Made by a program: the position numbers and the translations under genes. The notes below the pieces were generated by a model. The model was not told the DNA's origin. It worked only from the letters and a program-made list of their open reading frames with translations, and did no database searches. 64,000 bases of DNA from the NCBI GenBank assembly GCA_038496445.1, contig JALMLS010000572.1:1-64000 (forward strand), read 5' to 3'. Source of the DNA: Trichosphaerium sp. ATCC 40318. Taxonomy: Eukaryota > Protista > Tubulinea. Positions 1,662-60,100 of the stretch are shown here, one piece after another. Numbering within the stretch: the stretch's first letter is position 1; each line of letters begins with the position of its first letter.

Positions 1662-3103
1662 CCCATGGTTAAAACCTGGCCTGATCGACAATCAATTCAA
1701 ACAGTTCAAAAATACCCTTACAAATCACACTTATTATATCCATACCCAAAACTCCCCTTCTAGCCGTCAACGTATGTACTCTTTTTGTACAACTCTCCTT
1801 TTATGACAAAGTTTATGTGGTACACTCAGGTGGGGTAGCCTCAGCAAGCTTGCAAAAACAATCGTGACTTGCGAATCAGCGAGTTGGAAGCATTGCGAAT
1901 ATGTTGTTATTGCCATTGAATTCTTAAGATGCATAACGAAACGTTAACATGTCATCACTGAATTATTGCTGTTTATTTCATGTAGTGTTCAAGTCGAGTC
2001 AAAACAACTACAATGTCAAAGAACTGCCACGTACTTGTTCAAAATGCAAATCTACTTACTAATGAGCGTACTATAGGTAAATACAGCTGATTCAGGGCAC
2101 TCCTTCTTATTGGACCTTCCTATTGAGCTACAGCTTGATATTATGGATTTAGATGCACAGGTGTAAAGATGCCCGGATTTATACTATCTCAATTATACTG
2201 AGATTCCGTAGGCATCTCATACTAAATAAAATAGTATGAAATCTCCCGACTAAATACTTGTAATAACTGTAAGTAATAATAAACATAATTTAATAACTAA
2301 ACTCGTGTTACACCTTCTCTTCAATCACTGACTAAGTACGTCGTGATATTATACATATACTAATTAGGTAGTAAAAGTAAATAACGGACGCTTTTACACA
2401 GGTGTACAACAAATGGCCTGTATTATCAAAATACAGTGCAAAGACAACAAGGTATGATGACAAGCTTAAAAAGCACGGAAAATGGCGTAGAGGGTATACA
2501 AACAAGGTAATGCACCACAAGTTGTATGTGAATGTTCTTGGAATCACGGACAACTACATGGAGTGTTTAAGTTATTCAATTCCAGTGGTATTCTATCTCA
2601 AGTAAACTACGTGAAAGGTAAACAAGAAGGACAGTACAACAAGTGGCATAGAGATGGTAAGCTTTGGGAACAGATTAATTATATCAATGGTAAGCGAGAA
2701 GGTGTATACAAGAAATGGTTTAAAAATGGACAGATAATGAAGGAGTATAATTATGTTAATAACCAGAATGAAGGTGATTATAAAAAATGGCATATAAATG
2801 GTACATTGCATGAGGAATTTAGATTGGAAAACAATAATGTAGGATCATATCAGAGATGGTATGATAATGGACAAGTTTGGGAGAAGTATGAGTATGTTAA
2901 TGGTAAACGAGAAGGAGACTATAAACTTTGGCATAAAAATGGAGAGTTGTACAAAAAGAGTACATACGTTGACGGTTTTCTAGAAGGGGAGTTTTGGGTA
3001 TGGTATAATAATGGAAGTGTGATTTGTAAGGGTATTTTTGTAAAAGGTAAGGCTGTTTATGAACAAGGTGAATTGTCGATCAGGCACAGGTTTTAACCAT
3101 GGG
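1662..3103. mobile_element. Non-autonomous TIR DNA-transposon-like element (~1.44 kb) carrying F-box/MORN-variant cargo
   Basis: Left end CCCATGGTTAAAACCTG-GCCTGATCGACAAT (1662-1692) is the reverse complement of right end ATTGTCGATCAGGCACAGGTTTTAACCATGGG (3072-3103), with one 1-nt indel. TA flanks both ends (1660-1661, 3104-3105) within GGTACC. No intact transposase inside. Confidence 0.8.
2101..3096 (+). pseudogene. Disrupted F-box-like + MORN-variant (MORN_2/YwqK-type) repeat gene, intronless, giant-virus-like
   Basis: 2101-2166 reads SFLLDLPIELQLDIMDLDAQV* (F-box-like LLDLPxE). 2402-2530 gives KKHGKWRRGY, then a frameshift into CSWNHGQLHGVFK.... ORF 2563-3096 has about 7 repeats of Y.NG..EG.Y..W..NG.... 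The stop codon lies inside the right TIR. Confidence 0.75.
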
Positions 3104-6259: not shown

Positions 6260-6490
6260 CGTTGACTTATTGCTTATGAACTCACTTACATCAATCTTAT
6301 AGTTGTTTACTGAAGAGTATGAACTCAAGTAATAATTCCTACGTTGAGTAAACTATGAAGGGAGGACGGAGAAAGAAAAAAAATACTCATTGTTGTGATT
6401 GGCAAAAAACCAAAAAGTGTCTGTAAGTGAAAACACCACAAGGCAAAAGATCATCGCTGGCAACCTACGTACTCATGCCTTATCATAGCA
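6260..6490 (-). pseudogene. Decayed copy of the last exon and 3' flank of the CBS gene
   Basis: 6351-6485 (aactatgaagggaggac...tgtctgtaagtgaaaacaccacaaggc...agatcatcgctggcaacc) aligns in the same orientation to 13071-13200 (aactacgaaggaggac...tgtctgtaagtgataatacaccacgtggc...agatcatcggtgacaacc), with indels. Confidence 0.7.
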
Positions 6491-6653: not shown

Positions 6654-9600
6654 TTAGGAAAACTGCTTGCCAAGCGGTTTTCCCTCATCATATGTGGCAT
6701 TGTTGACTTCGTCAACTGTGGCAGACGTAATATTTGTCAACTTAAACTTCTCATCAAACCACGCTCCAAGTCTGTCATAGTCCATTTTTTGAGCATAGCG
6801 CATAGGTACTTTGAAATAAGCCAGGATCTTATCCCAATTCATACTGATCATCTTTTGGGCAGTAAAGCTACGGTGTGGATCATCTTTCCAATCAATTTTT
6901 TCGTATGGTTCAGTAAAGCATTCGATACGAGCATGTCTTGGTAGTGTCAAGTATGCGTACATCTTGACAAGGGATACGAGGTCGTGCCATGGTTGTGGAG
7001 TAAATTCGATGTTGGGTTCATATTCGAGACACAGCTTTGAAGGTGCGAACAGAACATTGCCTTGGAACTCAACTTGTACACCTTCTTTGGCAGCACACGC
7101 CCAGTCAATAATGTACAACTCCTCTTCAAACCATATGACATTTGTAAGTGAGATATCTCTGAAAGGAAGAAGAGTCAATAAAAAGAAGAACACTAAGTTC
7201 AGAAAGGAGGAAAAAAAACCACGTGAAACTATGTAAGGTACCTGTGTACATATCCCAAGTCATGTGCAGCCTTTAGTGTCTTCACGAGAGATGAAAATGA
7301 GCACACGAGTCCTGTAATAGAGAATTCATCTGCGCTGAGTACTTGACCAACTGGTTCAGAAACGAAAAATATCTTGTTAGGGTTCTAGTAACAACATCAG
7401 CACAAACAACAGGAACAAAAGAAACTGAGAGTAAAAAAAAAAAACAAAACGTACTGCTCTTCCAGGTTTCCAAGATGTACGTGTTACTGTTGGAACATGA
7501 GCAGTTTCACATGGCTTTAGTTCATTCAGTACTTCTACTTCATGTTTTGCCGCCTCTAAAAATAGCGGATCTGGTAGGAGATGTTTTACAGCATAAGTCT
7601 TGTCAGCTGCTCGAACCTGGTAGACAGATGCTGATGCACCTTTACCCAGAATATTCGTTGCTGCATAGTAGGTCCCACCAATTTTGAACTGAGGTACAGA
7701 CCATCCGAGTTCCTCAGGAGACCGTGCCATGAGGTGGTTGATCATCTTTGCTCCCTCAGAGTTTTTACCGACAAAGTCATACACTTTCGTAAAATAGAAT
7801 TTATCGCCATCTGCTGTAGTGCCGTCCCAGTCCATACGCAGGAACTGTACGTATTTCTCGTTTGAAATAACTGCTGTCACTGATGTACGTGTTGGTTGAG
7901 CAGCCATAACACGAATACAATACATCCTAAAAACTGTGTCAACAACACAAGCAAGAGAAAAAAAAAGATGTTCGTACATTATTTGTCCAAGTTTTGCTGG
8001 TTCAAAACTTTTGGATTGTCCCACAACCAACTTGACCTCCCATGGTACTATGATCTGATACGATGTCGGTATGGTGATACCAAGGTTTCTGGGTGCCAGG
8101 AGGATGTCTGGTTTGGCAAAGCCATGCTCAGGTGTTTTTGGAAATGTATGGTTACTTTTGCCATCAAAGGCCATCATGTAATCAGAAGTGTTATCCTTGT
8201 TCAACAGTTCAACTGTTTGCTCTGTGAGGTAATCTTCCTTTTGTTGCCAGGTTTTCTTGATTTTATCCGCGCCCTTTCGTCGTTTGGTTTTCGTGACCGC
8301 TCGCTGCTTGGGCATCTTTGCAAACACGTTTTTAGGCAATCCGCGAAAATACTTTAAATATGATCCCTCGAGCCATGACTTCACCGCGAATAGTATGTCT
8401 CCAAGGTTATCGAATCTGCTGAACAATTCTGAGTACTCTAAAAATAAAAATAAGGTGTGATGAATTCATTGAGTAGATTTGTAAAACAAAAAAGTGACCA
8501 CCAAAAACTGAGCGTACTCATTATTGAGAGAGAATGGAGGTGTGCCTTTCGCAATTTTATCAATGCGACTGCATCGGCAAGTCCTTTTAATTGTGCCTCT
8601 GTGATCGCATTTTGTGCTTGTATGGCATCATTTTGTGCTTGTATGGCTGCGTTTTGCACTTTCAATTCTCGGATCTCACGTTCATTTTTCGCATCTCTTT
8701 CAGCATGTTGCGCTTGTATGGCATCATTTTTCGCTTGTGCGGCGTTCAATTTTTGAATCTCGCGCATAAAAAAATTGTCCATGCTCCTTTCTTGTTCATA
8801 ACCCTCATTTATGACGATTGAATGTCGGAGGCGCTTAGATTTGGTAGTCTCTGGAGAATCGGATGCTTTGTATGATATTGAACCAGTTGAGCTTCCACTT
8901 GACCGCCTACTACCAGATTTGTTCGGAGATGTGGGTGTGATTGGACCAGTGGATCTCGAGGCCTTTTGGTTGCTTGTAACATGTGTAGGAGAGCCTGCAG
9001 GCCGTTTACGAGTTCGTTTTATTTTGATAATTCGGCGTCTTTTTTGTACTTTTCCAGTCAGAGGTTGGGAAGTTGGGGTACGTTTTTTGGTTCCCCTTGG
9101 TCGAATGGCCGGTTTGGGTACTACAGTACATTAATCAGGAGCACACTTATTGGTGAAAACCGTTTCAAAAACACGCGGTTAAATGCGCGCTTTGAAAATC
9201 CGCGGCAAAAAAAAAGCGTACGTTTATACTTTGTTAAGAGGCTAACAGCCAACTGCGCCTTTACTTGTTTACCAATTGGCACTTCAAGGCTTCTACACAG
9301 ATCCTTTAATTCTGGCACCCTTAAACGCTTCAATTGGACTAGAATAACGGTTATTGATGAAGTGTCATTAATACCAACCGATTTATTGCGTGTTGTTGGC
9401 TAACACAAAAAAAACACTACTAAAAGGCTACCGTACGTGTTTTAGGATGCTTTTCAATGGTATTTACTAATTGTTGAGCGGTACGGCCTTTTGTACTCAA
9501 CTTTAGAGCAGAACAAATGGCGCGCAGCTCCCTTCGCGGAAATTTTGTAATCACTGACGCCACTGTCAAGTGCTTTTGCTTTTTTGCGACCCTTCCTGTG

Positions 9601-9668
9601 GAGAGTGGCGCTTTGGCAGCTTTGCGTTTATTTGACGCTTTCTTGCGACCTCCCCTGAGTTTGGACAT
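6654..9668 (-). CDS. SAP-SAP / coiled-coil / PD-(D/E)XK nuclease-like / FunK1-type protein kinase (Crinkler-RHS-like), copy A
   Basis: MSKLRGGRKK start. SAP-like FPRRELRAICSALKLSTKGRTAQQLVNTI and LKRLRVPELKDLCRSLEVPIGKQVKAQLAVSLL. QAQNDAI heptads. Nuclease-like KPDILL...WEVK...LGQI..YC.RV..AQPTR. Kinase motifs LGKGASASVY, AVK, HRDISLTN (across an intron), IIDW, GNVLFAP, PWHDLVSL. Confidence 0.8.
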
Positions 9669-9810
9669 CAGCTGTACCCCTTTTGGGCTATATTTGATTT
9701 GCCATCAGGTGCTCATCTTGTTGTTTCGCTAAAAATACGACTTAACATCAAAGACAAGTTAAACACTTGTGAACAAAGGACACTTTGAGTTTCTTCTTGA
9801 ACTGAACGGT

Positions 9811-9975
9811 TGAAAGTTTCAATAAAATGTATGCCACGTGCTTTTTGTACTGCTGATTCCAAAGTTTTATCCATCTTTACTACTCCTTCATCTGTTTTAT
9901 CAACAGTCCCAAGTGCTTTTAAACAGTCTTATACTCAAAAGAGGATCCTCTTTGTTGGTAGCATTCCTTTATGCC
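9811..9975 (-). pseudogene. Fragment of CBS gene penultimate exon/intron in the palindrome spacer
   Basis: 9811-9930 is nearly identical to 13241-13360 (tgaaagtttcaataaaatgtatgccacgtgctttttgtactgctgattccaaag...), then decays. Confidence 0.85.
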
Positions 9976-10255: not shown

Positions 10256-12749
10256 ATGTCTAAACTCAGAGAAAGTCGCAAGAAAGCGTCAAATAAGCGC
10301 AAAGCCCCAAAGGCGCCGCTACATACGGACAGGGTCACAAAAAAGCAAAAAAGGGCAACCAAGAACCGTACACCAACTTCCCAACGTCTGGCTGGAAAAG
10401 TAAACAAAGGCCGCCGAATCATCAAAATAAAACGAACTCGTAAGACCACACGAGCTGCTACGCGTATTACACGCACACCAAAGGCCCGGAAGCCAACTGG
10501 AACCATCACACCCGGATATCGCTCAAACAAATCTGGTAGTAGGCGGTCAAGTGGAAGCTCAACTGGTTCAATATCATACAAAGCATCCGATTCTCCAGAG
10601 ACTACCAAATCTAAGCGCCTCCGACATTCAATCGTCATAAATGAGGGTTATGAACAAGAAAGGAGCATGGACAATTTTTTTATGCGCGAGATTCAAAAAT
10701 TGAACGCCGCACAAGCGAAACATGCTGAAAGAGATGCGAAAAATGAACGTGAGATCCGAGAATTGAAAGTGCAAAACGCAGCCATAGTAGCACAAAATGC
10801 TGAGAGAGGTGTGAAAAATGAACGCGAGATCCGAGAATTGAAAGCACAAAATGATGCCATACAAGCACAAAATGCGACCACAGAGGCACAAATAAAAGGA
10901 CTTGCCAATGCAGTTGCATTGATAAAATTGCGAAAGGCACACCTCCATTCTCTCTCAATAATGAGTACGCTCAGTTTTTGCACTCTTTTTAATACGGTGC
11001 ACTCACTTTATTTTTAGAGTACTCAGAACTGTACAGCAGATTCGATAACCTTGGAGACATACTATTCGCGGTGAAGTCATGGCTCGAGGGTTCATATTTA
11101 AAGTATTTTCGCGGATTGCCTAAAAACGTGTTTGCAAAGATGCCCAAGCAGCCAACAGTCACGGAAACCACTTGGCAACAAAAGGAAGATTACCTCACAG
11201 AGCAAACAGTTGAACTGTTGAACAAGGATAACACTTCTGATTACATGATGGCCTTTGATGGCAAAAGTAACCATACATTTCCAAAAACACCTGAGCATGG
11301 CTTTGCCAAACCAGACATCCTCCTGGCACCCAGAAACCTTGGTATCACCATACCGACATCGTATCAAATCATAGTACCATGGGAGGTCAAGTTGGTTGTG
11401 GGACAATCCAAAGGTTTCGAACCAGCAAAACTTGGACAAATAATGTACGAACATCTTTTTTTTTCTCTTGCTTGTGTTGTTGACACAGTTTTTAGGTTGT
11501 ATTGTATTCGTGTTATGGCTGCTCAACCAACACGTACATCAGTGACAGCAGTGATTTCAAACGAGAAATACGTACAGTTTCTGCGTATGGACTGGGACGA
11601 AACTACAGCAGATGGCGATAAATTCTATTTTACAAAAGTGTATGACTTTGTCGGTAAAAACTCTGAGGGAGCAAAGATGATCAACCACCTCATGGCACGG
11701 TCTCCTGAGGAACTCGGATGGTCTGTACCTCAGTTCAAAATTGGTGGGACCTACTATGCAGCAACGAATATTCTGGGTAAAGGTGCATCAGCATCTGTCT
11801 ACCAGGTTGAAGCAGACGATAAGACTTATGCTGTAAAACATCTCTTTCCACAATTCTTGGAGGAGGCGAAACATGAAGTAGAAGTACTGAATGAACTAAA
11901 GCCATATGAGACTGCTCATGTTCCAACAGTAACACGTACATCTTGGAAACCTGGAAGAGCAGTACGTTTTGGTTTTTTTTTTTACTCCAGTTTCTTTTGT
12001 TGTTGTTGTTTGTGCTGATGTTGTTACTAGAACCCTAACAAGATATTTTTCGTTTCTGAACCAGTTGGTCAAGTACTCAGCGCAGATGAATTCTCTATTA
12101 CAGGACTCGTGTGCTCATTTTCATCTCTTGTGAAGACACTAAAGGCTGCACATGACTTAGGATATGTACACAGGTACATTCCACAGTTTCACGTGTTTTT
12201 TTTTTGAACTTAGTGTTCTCCTTATTGACTCTTCTTCCTTTCAGAGATATCTCACTTACAAATGTTATATGGTTTGAAGAGGAGTTGTACATTATTGACT
12301 GGGCGTGTGCTGCCAAAGAAGGTGTAGAAGTTGAGTTCCAAGGCAATGTTCTGTTCGCACCTTCAAAGCTGTGTCTCGAATATGAACCCAACATCGAATT
12401 TACTCCACAACCATGGCACGACCTTGTATCCCTTGTCAAGATGTACGCATACTTGACACTACCAAGACATGCTCGTATCGAATGCTTCATTGAACAATTC
12501 GAAAAAATCGATTGGCGTACCGATCCACAGCGTAGTTGTGATGCCCAAAAGATGATCAGTATGAATTGGGATAATGTACTATCTTATTTCAAAGTACCTA
12601 TGCGCTATGCTCAAAAAATGGACTATGACAGACTTGGAGCGTGGTTTGATGAGAAGTTTAAGTTGAGTAATATCAGGTCTGTCACAGTTGATGACATGCA
12701 CAACGCCACATATGATGAGGGAAAACCAATTGGCCAGCAGTTTTCTTAA
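10256..12749 (+). CDS. Coiled-coil / PD-(D/E)XK nuclease-like / FunK1-type kinase, copy B (lacks SAP domains)
   Basis: MSKLRESRKK start. Four GT-AG introns (first 10965-11017) give a continuous frame through KPDILL..WEVK, GKGASASV, HRDISLTN, DW and HDLVSL to the stop at 12749. Confidence 0.82.
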
Positions 12750-13098
12750 GCTTGTAAAATAGACGACAAATAGATGGGGATTTGGTTTGATAATACTACA
12801 CATGTACATATTGGGTTCACATTAAATAAATTCATTACCACCGCTTCAACAGTAAACTTGTATTGCTAAACCACAATCATGCTTTCCTTTAGAACCTAGT
12901 GGTGTAGCTGCTCATATCTCACACTCATGTCACTATTTACAATGATGTAAAGTTGACTTTTGCATATTTAGACCTTGTTTACAGTGCATACTTATTGATA
13001 TTACCTTACTTTAATAAATCTTAATAGTTGGGGAGTATGAATTTGTATTAATAATAATGTACATTGAACAAACTACGAAGGAGGACAGAGAAAAGTGT

Positions 13099-14349
13099 TC
13101 ATTGTTTGTGCTTGGCAAAATGGCAAATAATGTCTGTAAGTGATAATACACCACGTGGCTTAAGATCATCGGTGACAACCCATAATCGATGCACTTTTAG
13201 AGAAAGCATCTATTGAATAAGAGTATTAGAAATATTGACATGAAAGTTTCAATAAAATGTATGCCACGTGCTTTTTGTACTGCTGATTCCAAAGTTATAT
13301 CCATCTTTACTACTCCTTCAGCTGTTTTATCAACAGTCCCACGTGCTTTTAAAAACTCTTGTACTGGCAAGATAAGGTCCTCCAAGTTTGTAGCATTCAC
13401 GCCTTGTAGACATTACTTAGAGTATTTATGACACAAAATGACGTTACCTCGTAAATCAGAGCTTGACAGTGTTCCACAGACTGTTCCTTTATTAGCGTCC
13501 ACAACACATAATGCATTGTGTGACAACAGTGCCATCAATCGAAAACCTTGTAATGCCTATAAAGGAAGTGTTATACTACTAAGTACACCATTGTCAATTG
13601 AATTGATTGCTTACTGTCTGGTCGTTTTTCATGGTAGCAACATCTGTAGCTTTTACTATCTTTAAATCTTCTAAAGAGGACTTCCAAGCTATCACATGTT
13701 AACAATAATGTTGTCAAAGTTGACGTTCGTACGCTTGGATTCTTTTTCTTTATTTTTGAATAAAAATCTTACGACATCAGTTTGCGACAAAATACCAACT
13801 TCTATCGTATTGTTAGATCAAGAAACACCTTGTATACTATTTAACGCACTATCTGGACCACCTAAAGTAACAAGAGCTCGATGTTTACCGGCAGCATAAT
13901 GCTAAAGAGTGATTAGTGTTTATCCGTTAAATCACGTGAGCTTACTTGAATGACACTAGATAAGCTCGTTTTACCGTCTACAGGCATAGTTATACTCTTT
14001 GAATGCTCAGCAAAGAAAGCAGACGCATCAATAGCGTATTTAGCCTTGTTATCGACTGTTTGGCTCAAAACGGTGCCATCATCGTTAAATTGAGTGAATG
14101 TAAGTGCTATCATTATATCCCATATCCCAACGAGCCCGAGGTATCTCTACAATAGCAGTTTAGGATTGTTGCCGTTTTTTCTTTTGTACGAACCTTTTTC
14201 TTCGTGTCAAGGATTGGAATAGCTGTAATATTACTCTTGCTCATTGATTGTAGCGCTTCCGCGATTGAAGACTCTGTTGTAGCGAATATAATATTCTGAT
14301 TGTCTGACACGATATCCTTTAGTGTTGTTTGTTTAATTAACGTTTCCAT
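13099..14349 (-). CDS. CBS-domain protein (SDS23/AMPK-gamma-like)
   Basis: SSIAEALQSMSKSNITAIPILD, HRALV, and ...TLESAVQK|MLSLKVHRLWVVTDDLKPRGVLSLTDII CBS repeats. Confidence 0.8.
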
Positions 14350-16722: not shown

Positions 16723-17592
16723 TTATTCTATTGTTACATTTTCTACTTTTTCTACTTTGCCTTCCATGGCATGAAGTTTTTTCAAGTGCGATATCACGTG
16801 ACCTTTTAGTTTAAACTTTTTATGACAAACAGAACATCTATAAGGTCTCTCTTCAGAATGAGTAGTAAGATGACGTCTAACATCAGCAAGACATGCAAAT
16901 CTTTTACTACAAAGAGTACAGGCAACCTTCCTTTCACCTTTATGTACGTTACCCAAGTGTCTTTGTAGATTACCCCTTGTAGAGAATCTTTTACCACATC
17001 CTTTCTCTTTACAAGCGTAAAGCTTCTCTGTCGCGTGAACGCCATTTTTATGTCTGTTATAATCTCCCTTTTGCTTGAAAACCTTACCACAGATACCGTC
17101 CTCTGTTTTATGTTCACATATGAACCGTTTAGCGTGTAATTCTATGTGTCGTGTTAGGCTTCCTGATCTTTTGAATATCCTTTTGCATATAGGGCACTTT
17201 TCGTTAATATTTGAAGGTTTGGGACCTGTCTTAAGCTTTTTTCTTGCTGTTGTTTGTTTTTCTGTCTTTTCTGGTTCTTCTGAATCGCTTCGCTTTCTTT
17301 TTGTGCCCTGAGGTTTTGGAAGTAAGCTAAGCGTAGTTTCGTCGCTATCTGGTTCAGTTTGAGAGCCTTCACAGTGAGGACATAAATTAGAAGCAAATGG
17401 TAGCGAACAAGCCATGCAAGACGCGCAAGCGTGATGCCCACACGGTAAAATCTGTAAATCACTGGTTTGATAACAAAAACAACAGTTTCGATCAAAATCA
17501 TCTTGTAAATCGCTGAGAAAGCTGTAATAGGTATTTAATACAAAAAAGAAAGTTTTAACGTGTTTAGAACCTCGTTGAACCATGTTGTGCAA
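16723..17592 (-). CDS. RING-like + multi-C2H2 zinc finger protein (5' end uncertain)
   Basis: CCFC...PCGHHACASC...CPHC followed by five C2H2 fingers with HSEERPY-type linker. Confidence 0.85.
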   Translation of the reverse strand: MHNMVQRGSKHVKTFFFVLNTYYSFLSDLQDDFDRNCCFCYQTSDLQILPCGHHACASCMACSLPFASNLCPHCEGSQTEPDSDETTLSLLPKPQGTKRKRSDSEEPEKTEKQTTARKKLKTGPKPSNINEKCPICKRIFKRSGSLTRHIELHAKRFICEHKTEDGICGKVFKQKGDYNRHKNGVHATEKLYACKEKGCGKRFSTRGNLQRHLGNVHKGERKVACTLCSKRFACLADVRRHLTTHSEERPYRCSVCHKKFKLKGHVISHLKKLHAMEGKVEKVENVTIE

Positions 17593-24126: not shown

Positions 24127-27100
24127 ATGCAACAAGACGAGTTGGATCAGTTAATAGATGACATTGAGAAGAACTTGCCGTCGTTAACAGAGGTTAATTG
24201 TTCCAATTGTTATTTGGGTGAATTGGAGATGATAGACTTGATAGACGAGCTAGAAAACAACAAATACATTACACGATTAAACTTAGAACATAACTATATT
24301 GGCAAAGAGGGTGTAGAAAAATTGGCTCAGATCTTGTCAGGAGAGTCAGTTTTGCAAGCATTGAACTTAAAACATAACCTACTATCGCCAAACGATATTA
24401 AATGTTTGGTCAGAGCGTTACGAGAGAACTTTTCTGTAACCGAGTTTGAGATCGCCGAGCACGTCAGCGATGGCGGTATACCGTCGTGGGTTTACTTGGC
24501 AGATGATTACAAGGTTAAAGACGCACCTTTGCACTGGGAAGTTTGGACCGAGGAGAATTACAAAGAGCTGCTAAAGCAAATCTCTAAAATACTGACATCG
24601 AATAAGGATTTAAACACGGTACCTTGCGCTTTTTGAATTTTTTTTGTTCATTATTAATAATTGTTGTTATCTTGATTCCATTTTTACTACGTTGGCGCTA
24701 TACCTGTTGGCGTGTAGAGCTTATTTTCGCCGTTTATTTTTTTTATTATTTTGTTTTGGTTAGATAGCCATTTTTCAGCTTCTTCGTTGAACCTCACAAC
24801 CACCATTAGGCGCTCAACGAAGGAGGAACAAAAATCAACCTTAGACAGCGCAATATAAATAACGTACCTCATTCAATTTTTTTACCTGGTATCGTCACTC
24901 TGGATCTATCTCAGAACACAATATCGGCGTTACCACCAGAAATATCACAACTGAAAAATCTTACAAACTTGAATTTGAGCAGCAACAAACTCGCTAAGCT
25001 CCCATCTGAACTTCAAACACTTGATAACCTTGAGACGTTAAAATTATCTTACAATAGATTCATTAATGTTCCAGCAGCTGTTTGTTTGCTATCAGGACTA
25101 AAGACGCTTTATATTGATAATAATCTCATAAAAGATATGCCAACTCCTTTGGCTCTTGTTGAGAATTTGAACGAACTTTATGTTGAAGGTAACCCCTTCC
25201 TTAAGTTTCTACCAACTTCAGTATCTGCTATGGCAAAACAAAATCCTATATCTATTATAAGTCATCTACGAGATCAATACATGGCAAGCAATAACGTCAA
25301 GTATCAGATGAAATGTTGTGTACGTGACATTTTTGATTTGTTTTGTTTTTTTTGAGTTTTTTTGGATTTTTTTATTGACACTAGTAGTTTGTTGGTGGTA
25401 AGGATAATACTAAATCATTCTTGTTGGACAGTCTCTTGGGTAATAAAAGAAAGCGACAGCGCGGTGTCACAATGTCATTGCGTAAAGGGATCAGTTCAAG
25501 AAAGTAAGCCTTTTTTTGTTCTTTTTTTTTTGCATACTTCGTTTTTTGTTGACACTCTCTTTAGAGTCCACAGTCGCGAGAACATCGCATCTGAGTTTAT
25601 GGACCCTGGTGGCGCTATCTATATCACAGAATTAGAGCTTAGGAATAAGGAAGTCATGCCTGAAGATGAAGCTCTTCAATTGCTGGTGTGGGACTTTGCT
25701 GGTAACGATGTACGAATAGTTATAATGTTTGATAGAATATTTTTGTTGACTCATGTGTTTAGGATTCGTATTATGCTACCCACCAATTTTTCTTGACAAA
25801 ACATACTATGTATGTTCTGGTATTTAATTTGCTTGAACCTCAAGAAGACAAGTCAAAGATTCTTTACTGGCTTCACACTATAGCCTCTCTTGGGAAAAAA
25901 GATACATTAGTTATGCTCGTAGGTGCATATAGCGATGGACATGCGCGATGCACGAATACGCACATGTACGTGCTTTTTTGGAACAAACCAAACCAACGAC
26001 AGTTTTCTTTGTTTAATTTTATCACGGTGTATTTACTTATTTTAGTGAAAATACCTTTGCAGCAATAAAGTCACGTGTATCAGCCAAGAAAAAATATAAG
26101 AATATTAAGTTTTTTGGTGCTGTATCTAATACTAAAACTGATATAAAAGACGTACGTCGTGACGTTGTTATTGTGGAAATTTTTTAGTATACCTCGGTAT
26201 CTTAATTTTTTTTTTATAGTTTAAGCGCGAGTTGATGAGAGTTGCCATGATGAACGATACTGTCAAAAAAGGTGTCCCACCAAAGTTTAATGCATTAGCG
26301 GCAAGATTGAAGCTTGTAACTGAAGCTAACCTCACACCTCCTCTGTTGAGTCAACAAAAATATAAACAGCTTGCAGAGCAGTCTGGTATACTTTCAGAGG
26401 AAGAACTTAATAATGCAACACGATATCTATATTCAAGAGGCTTATTGGTACGTTTTAGATCCATCAGCAGAACAGTTTTGCAAATAGCTTTGCTGCCCTT
26501 TAATAACTGTATTTTAATGACTTGTAGGTGCGTTTTGAAGGTGATGTATTGAGCAAGTATATTGTATTGGATAATAAATGGTTGATACAATCCTTTGGCA
26601 ACATCATTAAGAACCAAGATCTCGTGCGAGGTGGAAAATTACCAGCAGGTATGATTTTTTGCAAAGTTTTTTTTTTTCGTCTTACCGCGATTTAACAATC
26701 TTTAGACCAGTTGGGTAAGATATGGAAGAGCCCAGAGTACAAGAGGGATATATGGGATTGGTTATTAAAGCTCTTGGAAAAGAAGAATATTTGCTACAAT
26801 CTGGCGCAAAGGAAGAAATTACAAATAAAGAGGAAGTCAAGTCCGAAGTTAACAAAGATCGAAAAGCCAAAGAACGAGTACCTCATACCTTGGTTGTTGC
26901 CTTCAAGTGTCCCTGTAAATTACAGACATGTTTGGCCTGCTGGTGATCCAAAACAGTTGACAAGGTTGGCCAACCGTTTACTTTTTATTGCTAATCAACT
27001 ATTACAGGTGGTACCAACTACAATTCATTCCGCCTGGGCTATTCACTCATTTTATGGTGCGTCTATTACGTTCTCCAGAATGGGATGTCGTATTGTATTG

Positions 27101-57186: not shown

Positions 57187-60100
57187 TTAGTACAAATGAG
57201 CAGGCGTAGGGCTTTGTTCACGAGATTTTGATGCAATAGAAAGAGATGTCCTATTATTCTCCTCTTCACTAGCAACACTCATAGTAAGTGTATCTTCGTT
57301 TGTGTATTCATCTACAGAATCTAAACCAAAAGTCAGAAAAAAGTCACAAGTGATAAGTTTAAATACCAAGTTGAGTCGCTTTCTTACCTTCAGTGTCAAA
57401 TCCCCTAGGCGGCATAGCAGGCATAGCAGACTTACGTCTGGGACGTGCTTCAGGATTCATTGATTTACGAGATAACCTCGTTGAGTACCGGACAGAAGAC
57501 TTTTTATATAATAAATCGCTGGAAGAACCAGGATAATTCATAGATGAAGAATACTGCATTTCTGCAGTTGCTCTACCCTTTGGTCGGCGTATTTGAGCCA
57601 CAGACTGACTTCTCGGTGCAGAAATTTTGCTTGATCTCTTCTTTTTCCGTCGCGGTCTGAGCGGCATTACACCTTGTAGTCTTAACTGAAAAATGCTAGA
57701 GCCTTTCTGGTCAGAATAATCAGTCCAAAATATTCCACCACTGGTAGTTAAAAATTTTATATTTGTTCCATTCTTCCCATTTGGTAGCCGTATTGTTTGT
57801 ATTAAAGATCCATTCACAAGCGTACGCACTTCAACATAATTTTGGGTAAAAGCTAGAACATAAGGAAGTACAACAACTACAAAAAAAATGAGCAAACAAC
57901 ATTGAAACAATAAAAACACATAAATATGTGTTGAGCTGTGCAACAAAAAAAAAAAGAAAATAAGCTCGTACCAAATGCGCTTGGCTTTGTCGAAAACTTC
58001 ATCTCATAGTCACGACTCTCGCGGCCATACTGACGCACAAACGTGCCTCTATCTAATAGAAATATTAACAAAAAAATTGACATTATTTGTGCTGAACTTA
58101 CTATCGAATAATAGCACTACTTCGTTCCTATCCAGTGTCACAGCATCAATAGGTTCTATCCTTGTTTCTGAGGAAAACAGATCATGCATTTCAATACGGT
58201 CAATATCAATAAATGAAAACCGAGTAGCAAAGCCTACGACTAAGCCACCAAATCCAAAATTTATAGTAAGCGGCCTGTCCTTTAAGCGAACATTGACAGG
58301 TGTTTGTTTGAAGTTATCTTGCACCCACTGATATAAAGTGAGGCGAGATTTAGTTGCTATACATAAAAATAGACTACTTCCAATAGTGCCTAACGTAAAC
58401 TTTACACAAGATCTTGTGTTTTGCAATGTAAATGCTAGAACGAAAAGTCAACTCAGCATCATCATTTAAAAAGAAAAAAAAAGAAATGGATGAAAATCTA
58501 CACCACTTACCAAGTGGCTTTTTCTTCCCCTGTGCAGCATCAAGTAAGGAAGATAAATCATATATTACAATGCCAGTCTAATCAAAAAATTAATAACAAA
58601 ACAAATAAAAAGTATGATATTACCTTGTAAACAAGAGTGACAACAATCCGCAGTGCTGCGACAACAGTGATTTGTTTAAAGTACAAAAGTCGCTTTGTAT
58701 AATTAGGTATAGGAATAGGTTTAATATTCCGACGAGAAGAGAGTTTGCCACCTGAAACAGACGGCTCAAAAATGTACAATCCCGACTTTGTTCCAATAAA
58801 CATAAAACTCCCTATAACACAAGTAAGAAAAAGAATGATAAAGGTCTATTGCTTTGTACAAAACCAAACGCACCCCAAGTATCACAACACTGTATTTGAT
58901 GCTGGAATCCTTTGACTATAGCTCGTGTATGAAAAACAGCAGCCTCTTCCTTACTTTCCTTTCCCCAGCTCGTTATTTTAGCTTTTTGTTCTTTCAAGTG
59001 CTTTTGAGTCCTACGCTCGCTTTTTCGCTCTTCTTTGTTTTTTACCATTGGCGATCCAATCCGTTTCGTTGAAGAGCTTGGAAACAACGAAAAAATCTCC
59101 TGCAGAGTTTCCGAAATAATACTTGAAGTGCTGAATGATGGTGCTGAGCGATACGCCTCACGCTCGCCGTTAATCAACTTAGCAAGCATGAATTGCTTTA
59201 GCAAGTCACTATGCGGGAAACTTGGTGGGTTGGGCAATGGTGGGTGAAACGGTTTGACACTTGATTTTATAGAAAAGCCAACATTGTAAGAGCCTTTCTC
59301 TGTAGGCCGTATCACAAGATAAATATGCGGGAACTTTGAGGAAAGTGTATCAGGGCACCATGAGTACGTAGTACCATAATCCTGGAACACAATAACCTAT
59401 AATAAAGCATTAGTTTCGCATGTAATTTTTTTATTTTTTTCTGTAATTTAGACAGTGAACGTACTGCAATATCATTACCAATATGCCTCTTTCGTTCCAA
59501 CTGCTGAGAATCACCAGAACAAAAAGGAATTAATGTAGACACATGGAACATAATCTCATAGCCACTGTATTTTGTATAAATAGAGTGTGTACCACTACGG
59601 TCAGCTATTCAGCATTGATTAGCATTCTAAGATGTCAATTCATCGCGTACCTCCTGTATTATCCAAACCAGCACAGAAGCCATCGAACGCATTGAGTTTT
59701 ACCTTTTTACCAAGCAACGATAAAAACTTTGTAAACTGAGGGCTAGGGTTGCTGTTACCGAACATTTGCTCTTCGGTGGTCTGTCCAGGTTTTGCGTAAA
59801 GCACACCAAACTTATACGCGCGTTTTGCCTAAACGGTCACCGTTAGCTTTGATTTAAGCGAAATGGAAGTTTTGAAATAAAAAAAACCCAAAAAAAAACT
59901 TGTCTGTTGCCAATAATGTCGTACGCTTTGCAATTCTAGCGACAGCAACTCTTTTTGCATTTTAATATCGCGAATTAGACGTAATTTACGCCGGTTCAAA
60001 CGAGGGCGCATTCTCCTGACAATGTCGCTAGCTGCCACTCTGCCCTTCATTGTGAGGCACAAACGTTCTAATCCCTGTAGTAGAATTGAGACTCTACAAT

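Follow-up and report, generated by a model that had tools for sequence, protein, structure and literature searches.

Introduction

SPOK3 of Podospora combines a variable-repeat coiled coil with a killer domain of the PD-(D/E)XK type and a kinase domain that confers resistance. Killing by Spok3 depends on the nuclease lysine, and resistance depends on the kinase aspartate (PMC6660238); SPOK1 kills by targeting DNA (PMC9972908). In CR proteins, according to PMC5289972, which summarises Zhang et al. 2016, the restriction endonuclease (REase) is regarded as the toxin, under regulation by the kinase. The same source gives the REase and kinase pair as approximately one sixth of CR C-termini and describes the proteins as nuclear and dimerising (PMC5289972). 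Here we describe a gene, copy A, and its paralog, copy B, in a stretch of 64,000 nucleotides from Trichosphaerium sp. ATCC 40318 (contig JALMLS010000572.1, positions 1–64,000; hereafter the window). We read copy A as a header variant of the known nuclease–kinase conflict module, with a layout closest to that of Spok. At a probability of roughly 0.6, copy A belongs to a lineage-specific gene family, is intact and transcribed, and encodes a nuclear, DNA-tethered nuclease–kinase that likely has a conflict function.

The REase and kinase core is already known from Spok, FunK1, DUF6826 proteins and CR effectors. The novelty seems to lie in the front end, comprising stretches resembling a nuclear localization signal (NLS), two SAP motifs and a coiled coil, and in the pairing of SAP-plus and SAP-minus paralogs. 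Our literature search, which did not cover the headers of Zhang et al. 2016, found no description of a nuclease–kinase pair with a SAP DNA-tethering front end; it found no paper joining FunK1 with SAP and none naming DUF6826.

Gene structure and domain order

The window has a eukaryotic composition, with approximately 38% G + C and short GT..AG introns. The coding sequence of copy A runs on the minus strand from an ATG at 9668 to a stop codon ending at 6654, in a frame-consistent model of six exons (9668–9437, 9338–9222, 9120–8518, 8437–7455, 7384–7242 and 7158–6654) separated by GT..AG introns of 70–101 nt. The product comprises 860 amino acids; excision of a candidate in-frame intron of 51 nt would shorten it to 843. 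Exon 1 carries the start codon, the basic NLS-like N-terminus in common with copy B and SAP motif 1 (approximately 9447–9548), and exon 2, with predicted splice sites, carries SAP motif 2. Exon 3 encodes a basic S/T/P-rich linker and then a heptad-repeat coiled coil (approximately 8518–8764). Exon 4 encodes a helical linker, the PD-(D/E)XK-like domain (approximately 7707–8180; D428, E451, K453 and Q498) and the kinase N-lobe with its G-loop and K602. The kinase hinge and the helix ahead of the catalytic loop lie in exon 5, as placed by the RNA junction and by alignment to the family hidden Markov model (HMM), and exon 6 holds the catalytic loop (HRD D694, N699), DW(A) D711, the C-lobe and the stop codon.

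The initial annotation had listed a basic N-terminus, two SAP-like motifs, heptads, a KPD/EVK/GQI/Q.TR module and an HRDIS/DW/HDL kinase, all of which were found where it had placed them. The order that it proposed, SAP-SAP, coiled coil, PD-(D/E)XK-like domain and kinase, was recovered by Pfam, heptad register, family alignment and HMM.

RNA contigs from public runs confirmed two introns of copy A and two of copy B. In copy A, intron 3 (8438–8517, 80 nt, GTACGC..TAG) is spliced in a contig of run X1 that joins 8437 to 8518, and intron 4 (7385–7454, 70 nt) in a contig of run X2 that joins 7384 to 7455 and matches copy A without a mismatch; the same junction is seen in a loose end of an X1 contig. 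Intron 5 is supported via the homologous intron, which is RNA-confirmed in copy B. Transcription of copy A was evident from a mismatch-free, A-specific contig (7257–7539) and from a contig over an A-only 33-nt insertion (8253–8285) with one mismatch. All donors of both copies begin with GTAC (GTACGG, GTACGC, GTACGT, GTACCT and GTACAT), four of them RNA-confirmed, which may be a genome-wide splice-site habit or a family-specific trait.

Kinase and relatives of the core

The protein kinase is complete, from the G-loop and K602 to the HRD, N699 and DW residues, and has the motifs HRDIS, IIDWA and WHDL. An exhaustive search of 1.84 billion representative proteins recovered nine relatives (E 1e-7 to 6e-4; 26–35% identical), so few and so weak that the family alignments are shallow. 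Pfam DUF6826 was present in seven of the nine, four of which also matched Pkinase, and was carried by nine of 14 aligned family members. A word-index homolog search with exon 4 returned nothing, and one with the family profile returned six proteins, two of them ordinary kinases. When a profile of copies A and B with the relative P0003 was compared with a ten-relative profile, hhalign gave 99.4% probability (E 2.8e-21, 196 columns) over a range that begins ahead of KPD and ends with the kinase N-lobe. An HMM built from the relatives only scored the spliced copy A protein at 183.6 bits and aligned VHRD, DW(G/A) and the helix F D in exons 5 and 6, two exons that were absent from the original query; this alignment ties the exons into one kinase.

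These profile comparisons show that the core of copy A is homologous to the DUF6826-plus-kinase family next to FunK1, and the kinship to the REase and kinase module of FunK1/CR-type proteins that had been proposed for it was upheld by hhalign, the family HMM and structural clusters. The narrower label "FunK1-type" held for the relatives: P0011 passes PF17667 (Pkinase_fungal/FunK1; 28.4 versus 24.1 bits), P0008 lies at the cut-off, and P0010 has full-length structural matches to Pkinase_fungal and DUF6826 clusters. For copy A itself the label is indirect. PF17667 matched no exon piece of copy A, the domain being split over three or four exons and scanned piecewise. PF20713 (DUF6826) gave no direct match even at E ≤ 10, nor did it when the nuclease domain was divided at the candidate mini-intron, although the profile comparison at 99.4% takes in this domain. 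Pfam membership of copy A in FunK1, DUF6826 or SPOK2_N could thus not be demonstrated.

No SAP domain was found by Pfam in any recovered relative. Residues 1–120 of P0010, a metagenomic relative, form a small helical N-terminal domain (predicted local distance difference test score, pLDDT, approximately 65–78) and a helical stretch before the DUF6826-plus-kinase core. Variable headers ahead of this core may be general.

Nuclease-like domain and candidate mini-intron

The middle domain contains the motifs KPD, WEVK, LGQIMY and AAQPTRT. The PD-(D/E)XK signature D ... (D/E)-x-K is present as D428 and E451-V-K453, in family-conserved columns, and D, (D/E)xK and QP.R are conserved columns of the family alignment. 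This conservation, with the hhalign result, sets the motifs apart from chance.

The AlphaFold2 (AF2) model of exon 4 was poor, with a mean pLDDT of 54 and values of 30–56 across the nuclease region. The model of P0010 was better (mean 73; 66–86 in the nuclease domain). Its elements follow one another as alpha-beta-beta-beta-alpha-beta; strand 2 opens with KPD and strand 3 contains (D/E)xK, which is the canonical order. A 248-residue DUF6826 representative from the ESM Atlas was the top feature neighbour of both copy A's domain and P0010's. This representative can be superposed on cyanobacterial proteins of the stand-alone kind and on proteins labelled "type I restriction endonuclease subunit R / HSDR_N", with template modelling (TM) scores of 0.59–0.72 over approximately 188 residues. 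It also superposes on Pkinase_fungal N-termini and on a Crinkler-containing cluster (TM 0.65–0.69); this cluster, in which 17% of members contain Crinkler, matches the DUF6826 domain at TM 0.65. BpuSI was the sole non-kinase structural match of copy A's own model.

Other searches gave no such match. Foldseek with the exon 4 model returned kinase N-lobes only, and structure searches of the Protein Data Bank (PDB) with the P0010 model were dominated by kinases. Against PDB sequences, the nuclease-domain profile produced only a chance-level match to a lipoprotein carrier, and phmmer with exon 4 gave nothing meaningful; hhalign of the same profile to the N-terminus of EcoKI HsdR gave no signal. 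The REase fold is less firmly backed than the initial annotation had it: the strand order of P0010 and the superposition on HSDR_N agree with it, but no sequence link to solved REases was found and the structural support is weak or indirect. The evidence is consistent but not strong, and we consider a REase fold of the middle domain quite probable.

The GQI..Y motif, which had been listed as part of the module, is present but straddles a stretch of 17 residues absent in all relatives. This stretch corresponds to 7927–7977 (minus strand) within exon 4, a 51-nt, in-frame, stop-free segment that is likely an intron, because it starts with GTACGA, is T-rich, ends with TTTTTAG and has a donor of the same type as the other introns. 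Its retention would place an additional 17 hydrophobic residues within the nuclease domain's long helix. It coincides exactly with a 17-column gap relative to all relatives, where the AF2 pLDDT falls below 50. Its removal raised the family HMM score from 183.6 to 200.2 bits (+16.6), and the alignment then spanned the whole nuclease domain. The segment is identical in copy B (11446–11496) and is shorter than the confirmed introns.

If the PD-(D/E)XK-like module were degenerate, copy A would be a chromatin-bound signalling kinase of FunK1-like type, with this module as a non-catalytic extension that has a structural or regulatory role. The Pfam FunK1 model does overlap DUF6826 in its N-terminal part, so that the two domains travel as a unit, and nuclease catalysis is predicted from sequence with indirect evidence for the fold. 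However, no columns of the domain are better conserved across distant relatives than D, (D/E)xK and Q, all of which are intact in both paralogs, the ratio of nonsynonymous to synonymous substitution rates (dN/dS) is the lowest of the protein in this domain (0.17), and the equivalent lysine in Spok3 is needed for killing (PMC6660238). We regard a kinase with an inert extension as unlikely, and a catalytic nuclease domain as the better reading.

N-terminus, SAP motifs and coiled coil

Residues 1–32 and 117–235 of copy A are extremely basic and contain several NLS-like clusters; the first 215 residues include 58 K + R and 7 D + E. On inspection, the N-terminus had no signal-peptide-like or hydrophobic stretch. 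SAP motif 1 (residues 41–74) matched Pfam SAP at E 2.4e-4 (21.1 bits) and SAP motif 2 at E 3.8e-4 (20.5 bits). PDB sequence matches of exon 2 were to the SAP domains of Siz1 and Ku70 only, and phmmer with exon 1 found nothing meaningful in the PDB. SAP is a sensible reading of both motifs, because two independent matches fall on one 37-position model and the PDB matches of exon 2 are to SAP domains only. Together, the basic stretches and SAP motifs make a nuclear, DNA-tethered location likely.

The predicted coiled coil spans residues ~236–318 and is partly encoded by 21-nt tandem repeats at 8607–8738. It keeps a single heptad register over approximately 13 heptads, with I, N, L or V at position a and L or I at position d, no proline and one glycine. 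Asn at heptad position a is characteristic of parallel dimers. The 33-nt insertion found in copy A only (8253–8285) adds an extra basic, NLS-like cluster, which lies after the coiled coil and before the nuclease domain.

Paralog B, selection and locus history

Copy B (10256–12749, plus strand) lies head to head with copy A and encodes 766 amino acids in four exons (10256–10964, 11018–11961, 12031–12173 and 12245–12749); its introns at 11962–12030 and 12174–12244 were confirmed by a run X3 contig. At the DNA level the two copies have an overall identity of 88%, rising to as much as 98% in the nuclease and N-lobe region. dN/dS between the copies was 0.36 over the whole protein and 0.17 in the nuclease domain, and both copies are therefore kept functional by purifying selection.

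The copies differ most clearly in the header. An A-only stretch of 475 bp (9099–9573, minus strand) reaches from the last part of exon 1 across exon 2, with introns 1 and 2 on either side of it, into the first part of exon 3, and includes both SAP motifs. The inverted-repeat arms on either side of it (9574–9696 and 9006–9098) are adjacent in copy B (10350|10351), which lacks exactly these 475 bp; the join is in frame, so that N-terminus, linker and coiled coil form one open reading frame (ORF). Copy B also lacks an 11-residue basic insertion and one heptad present in copy A. Its coiled coil carries an 18-residue insertion from a 75-nt tandem duplication (10711–10875; 2.2 copies, 82% matches), and the coil of copy A has one extra 21-nt unit elsewhere. 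From these repeat differences, coiled-coil length is evolving by repeat slippage.

Two contigs showed 3–4% mismatches: 12290–12749, with 14 in 460 nt (run X1), and 9452–9610, with 7 in 159 nt (run X3, kind unknown). They point to further expressed paralogs or divergent alleles, one with SAP1. This SAP1 contig, approximately 4% divergent and from another run, suggests that a loss of the 475 bp in copy B may be more likely than a gain in copy A.

Copy A is flanked by the halves of a diverged duplicate (6265–6465 and 9811–9966) of a segment at 12990–13398, to which they are 72% and 90% identical. That segment follows copy B and appears to be the 3' end of a neighbouring minus-strand gene with a CBS-like ORF (14113–14349); approximately 45 nt of the intact flanking segment are missing at copy A. 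A clean transposon insertion was considered and rejected, as the ends of the duplicated unit have no terminal inverted repeats or target-site duplication and the ~45 nt of flank are unaccounted for. Because neither terminal repeats nor a target duplication were found, rearrangement is more likely than clean transposition.

The larger Pfam-matching ORFs elsewhere in the window are ordinary host-type genes: a C2H2 zinc finger (16723–17592), a leucine-rich repeat (24127–24636), a CNH domain (57359–57946), a Rap-GAP (58812–59390) and a MORN_2 repeat ORF (2563–3096; E 3.8e-15). The viral-like DNA that had been reported a few kilobases away came down to the ORF with MORN repeats, which are not virus-specific, among these host genes, and adds nothing to the interpretation.

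Such neighbours, together with purifying selection on both copies, would also suit a housekeeping enzyme of DNA repair or chromatin, in which a SAP-tethered structure-specific nuclease like FAN1 or SLX4/SLX1 carries a kinase for signalling and has no conflict role. Designs that combine SAP with a nuclease are well known in repair (PMC4201288 and PMC8287910). FAN1 (UBZ-SAP-TPR-VRR_nuc) likewise has SAP N-terminal to a PD-(D/E)XK-superfamily nuclease and is a nuclear protein (PMC4201288), but it belongs to an unrelated nuclease family, has no kinase and is a conserved repair ortholog, which leaves a resemblance of design only. A repair factor would show clear orthologs, whereas the 1.84 billion representatives held only nine matches at E < 1e-3, none above 35% identity, and these relatives fall in the patchy DUF6826/FunK1 group. 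The recent duplication with loss or gain of a header and the unequal number of coiled-coil repeats also speak against a repair role, which we consider improbable; the conflict module remains our preferred interpretation.

Comparison with known systems

The layout of copy A is like that of Podospora SPOK2/3/4: a repeat-encoded coiled coil of variable length, a PD-(D/E)XK domain with D...ExK and a C-terminal kinase on one polypeptide, encoded by multi-copy, recently duplicated genes. SPOK2_N clusters occur among the Atlas feature neighbours at 0.79–0.88, which is a lead only. There are also differences. Copy A has no SPOK2_N Pfam match (exon pieces scanned), lacks the Cys-His cluster and contains no cysteine in the stretch that links the nuclease domain to the kinase G-loop. 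Its kinase is a regular one of the eukaryotic protein kinase type (nearest CK1, TTBK and VRK), whereas that of Spok is Kdo-like. Spok proteins lack a SAP header and come from an ascomycete, whereas copy A comes from an amoebozoan and is known here from sequence.

CR-type proteins such as Phytophthora infestans CRN8 likewise couple a REase-fold domain to a protein kinase, and the core of copy A has the make-up of this CR-toxin module (REase fold plus kinase), with the nuclease fold weakly shown. Unlike these proteins, copy A lacks a Crinkler ubiquitin-like (Ubl-type) header, an LxLFLAK-type translocation motif and a signal peptide. Pfam gave no match to the Crinkler/Ubl header (PF20147) on exons 1–3 at E ≤ 1. 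The front end is instead NLS-like, SAP-SAP and coiled coil, and the predicted site is the cell's own nucleus, not a host's. Because header and secretion signal are both absent, copy A is not a Crinkler, and its product is not a secreted effector; the initial annotation's phrase "Crinkler/RHS-type effector" does not apply in the strict sense, as no Crinkler header and no signal-like N-terminus were found.

The FunK1 and DUF6826-plus-kinase proteins of fungi, rotifers and other eukaryotes have the homologous core and DW(G/A) in place of DFG. They differ in that the closest relative is 26–35% identical and that those recovered have no SAP match.

Proposed mechanism and role

The following mechanism is suggested by analogy with Spok3, SPOK1 and the CR REase and kinase module. 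The basic stretches would carry the protein into the nucleus, where the two SAP motifs and the basic linker would hold it on DNA or chromatin. The coiled coil, with Asn at position a, would form a parallel dimer. The PD-(D/E)XK domain would cut nucleic acid, most likely DNA, and the C-terminal kinase would restrain or direct the nuclease through autophosphorylation or by phosphorylating a shared target. Such control by the kinase follows the proposals for Spok, with the kinase as antidote and the nuclease as killer, and for the CR-type REase and kinase module of CRN8. By the same analogy, the role is most likely a conflict function, either as a toxin–antidote or selfish gene or as a self/non-self or anti-invader effector in the cell's own nuclei.

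Several observations weigh against this interpretation. Both SAP matches fall under the Pfam gathering score (PF02037, 23.9 bits), and copy B has no SAP, so that SAP is not essential to family function. PDB sequence and profile searches found no sequence-level link from the nuclease-like domain to a solved or characterised REase. Gene conversion between the inverted copies may account for part of the low dN/dS, and the surroundings of the A/B pair yielded no transposase, terminal inverted repeats or target-site duplication. No RNA contig crosses introns 1 or 2 or covers 7927–7977, and the junctions of the SAP exons are predicted.

This last gap bears on whether the SAP header is real or an artefact of annotation. 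The SAP exons could lie outside the mature mRNA if the gene used a different start, kept an intron that contains a stop or had a 5' end in decay, and the product would then resemble that of copy B, which shows that a SAP-less form is viable. The sole exon 1 contig, the divergent one of run X3, adds to this doubt with its seven mismatches. Against it, exon 1 is a continuous ORF from the ATG at 9668 to a predicted GTACGG donor at 9436, and SAP1 shares this uninterrupted frame with the N-terminus common to both copies. The predicted introns match the confirmed ones in their GTAC donors and lengths and restore the frame exactly, and exon 2 (117 nt) is a clean phase 1-1 exon free of stops, the skipping of which would preserve the frame. 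An artefactual header is unlikely, and we retain the tethered form of the protein.

A more specific proposal by analogy, tentative and itself improbable, is that these genes are an amoebozoan counterpart of Spok. One protein would be both toxin (the DNA-tethered nuclease) and antidote (the kinase) and would act on nuclei sharing a cytoplasm, as a meiotic or spore driver or as a post-fusion lethal effector between incompatible plasmodia. If so, specificity would be set by the variability of the coiled coil and by the paralogs with and without SAP. To our knowledge, no gene has been cloned for the post-fusion lethal reaction of Physarum. The reaction between plasmodia has been known there since the 1960s (cited in bioRxiv 10.1101/2025.01.31.634296).

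Significance

The REase and kinase pair is a recurrent weapon in eukaryotic conflicts, as in Crinkler effectors, Spok gene drives and FunK1 expansions, and its mechanism is unsolved. Copies A and B provide a natural experiment, being two recent paralogs under selection that differ by the presence or absence of an in-frame tandem SAP header and by coil length. Their difference makes it testable whether DNA tethering and dimerisation set the target of the nuclease and the protection by the kinase. Copy A would also extend a Spok-like layout to Amoebozoa, in which syncytial plasmodia have many nuclei and lethal fusion incompatibility, and a nucleus-directed toxin–antidote gene could matter there.

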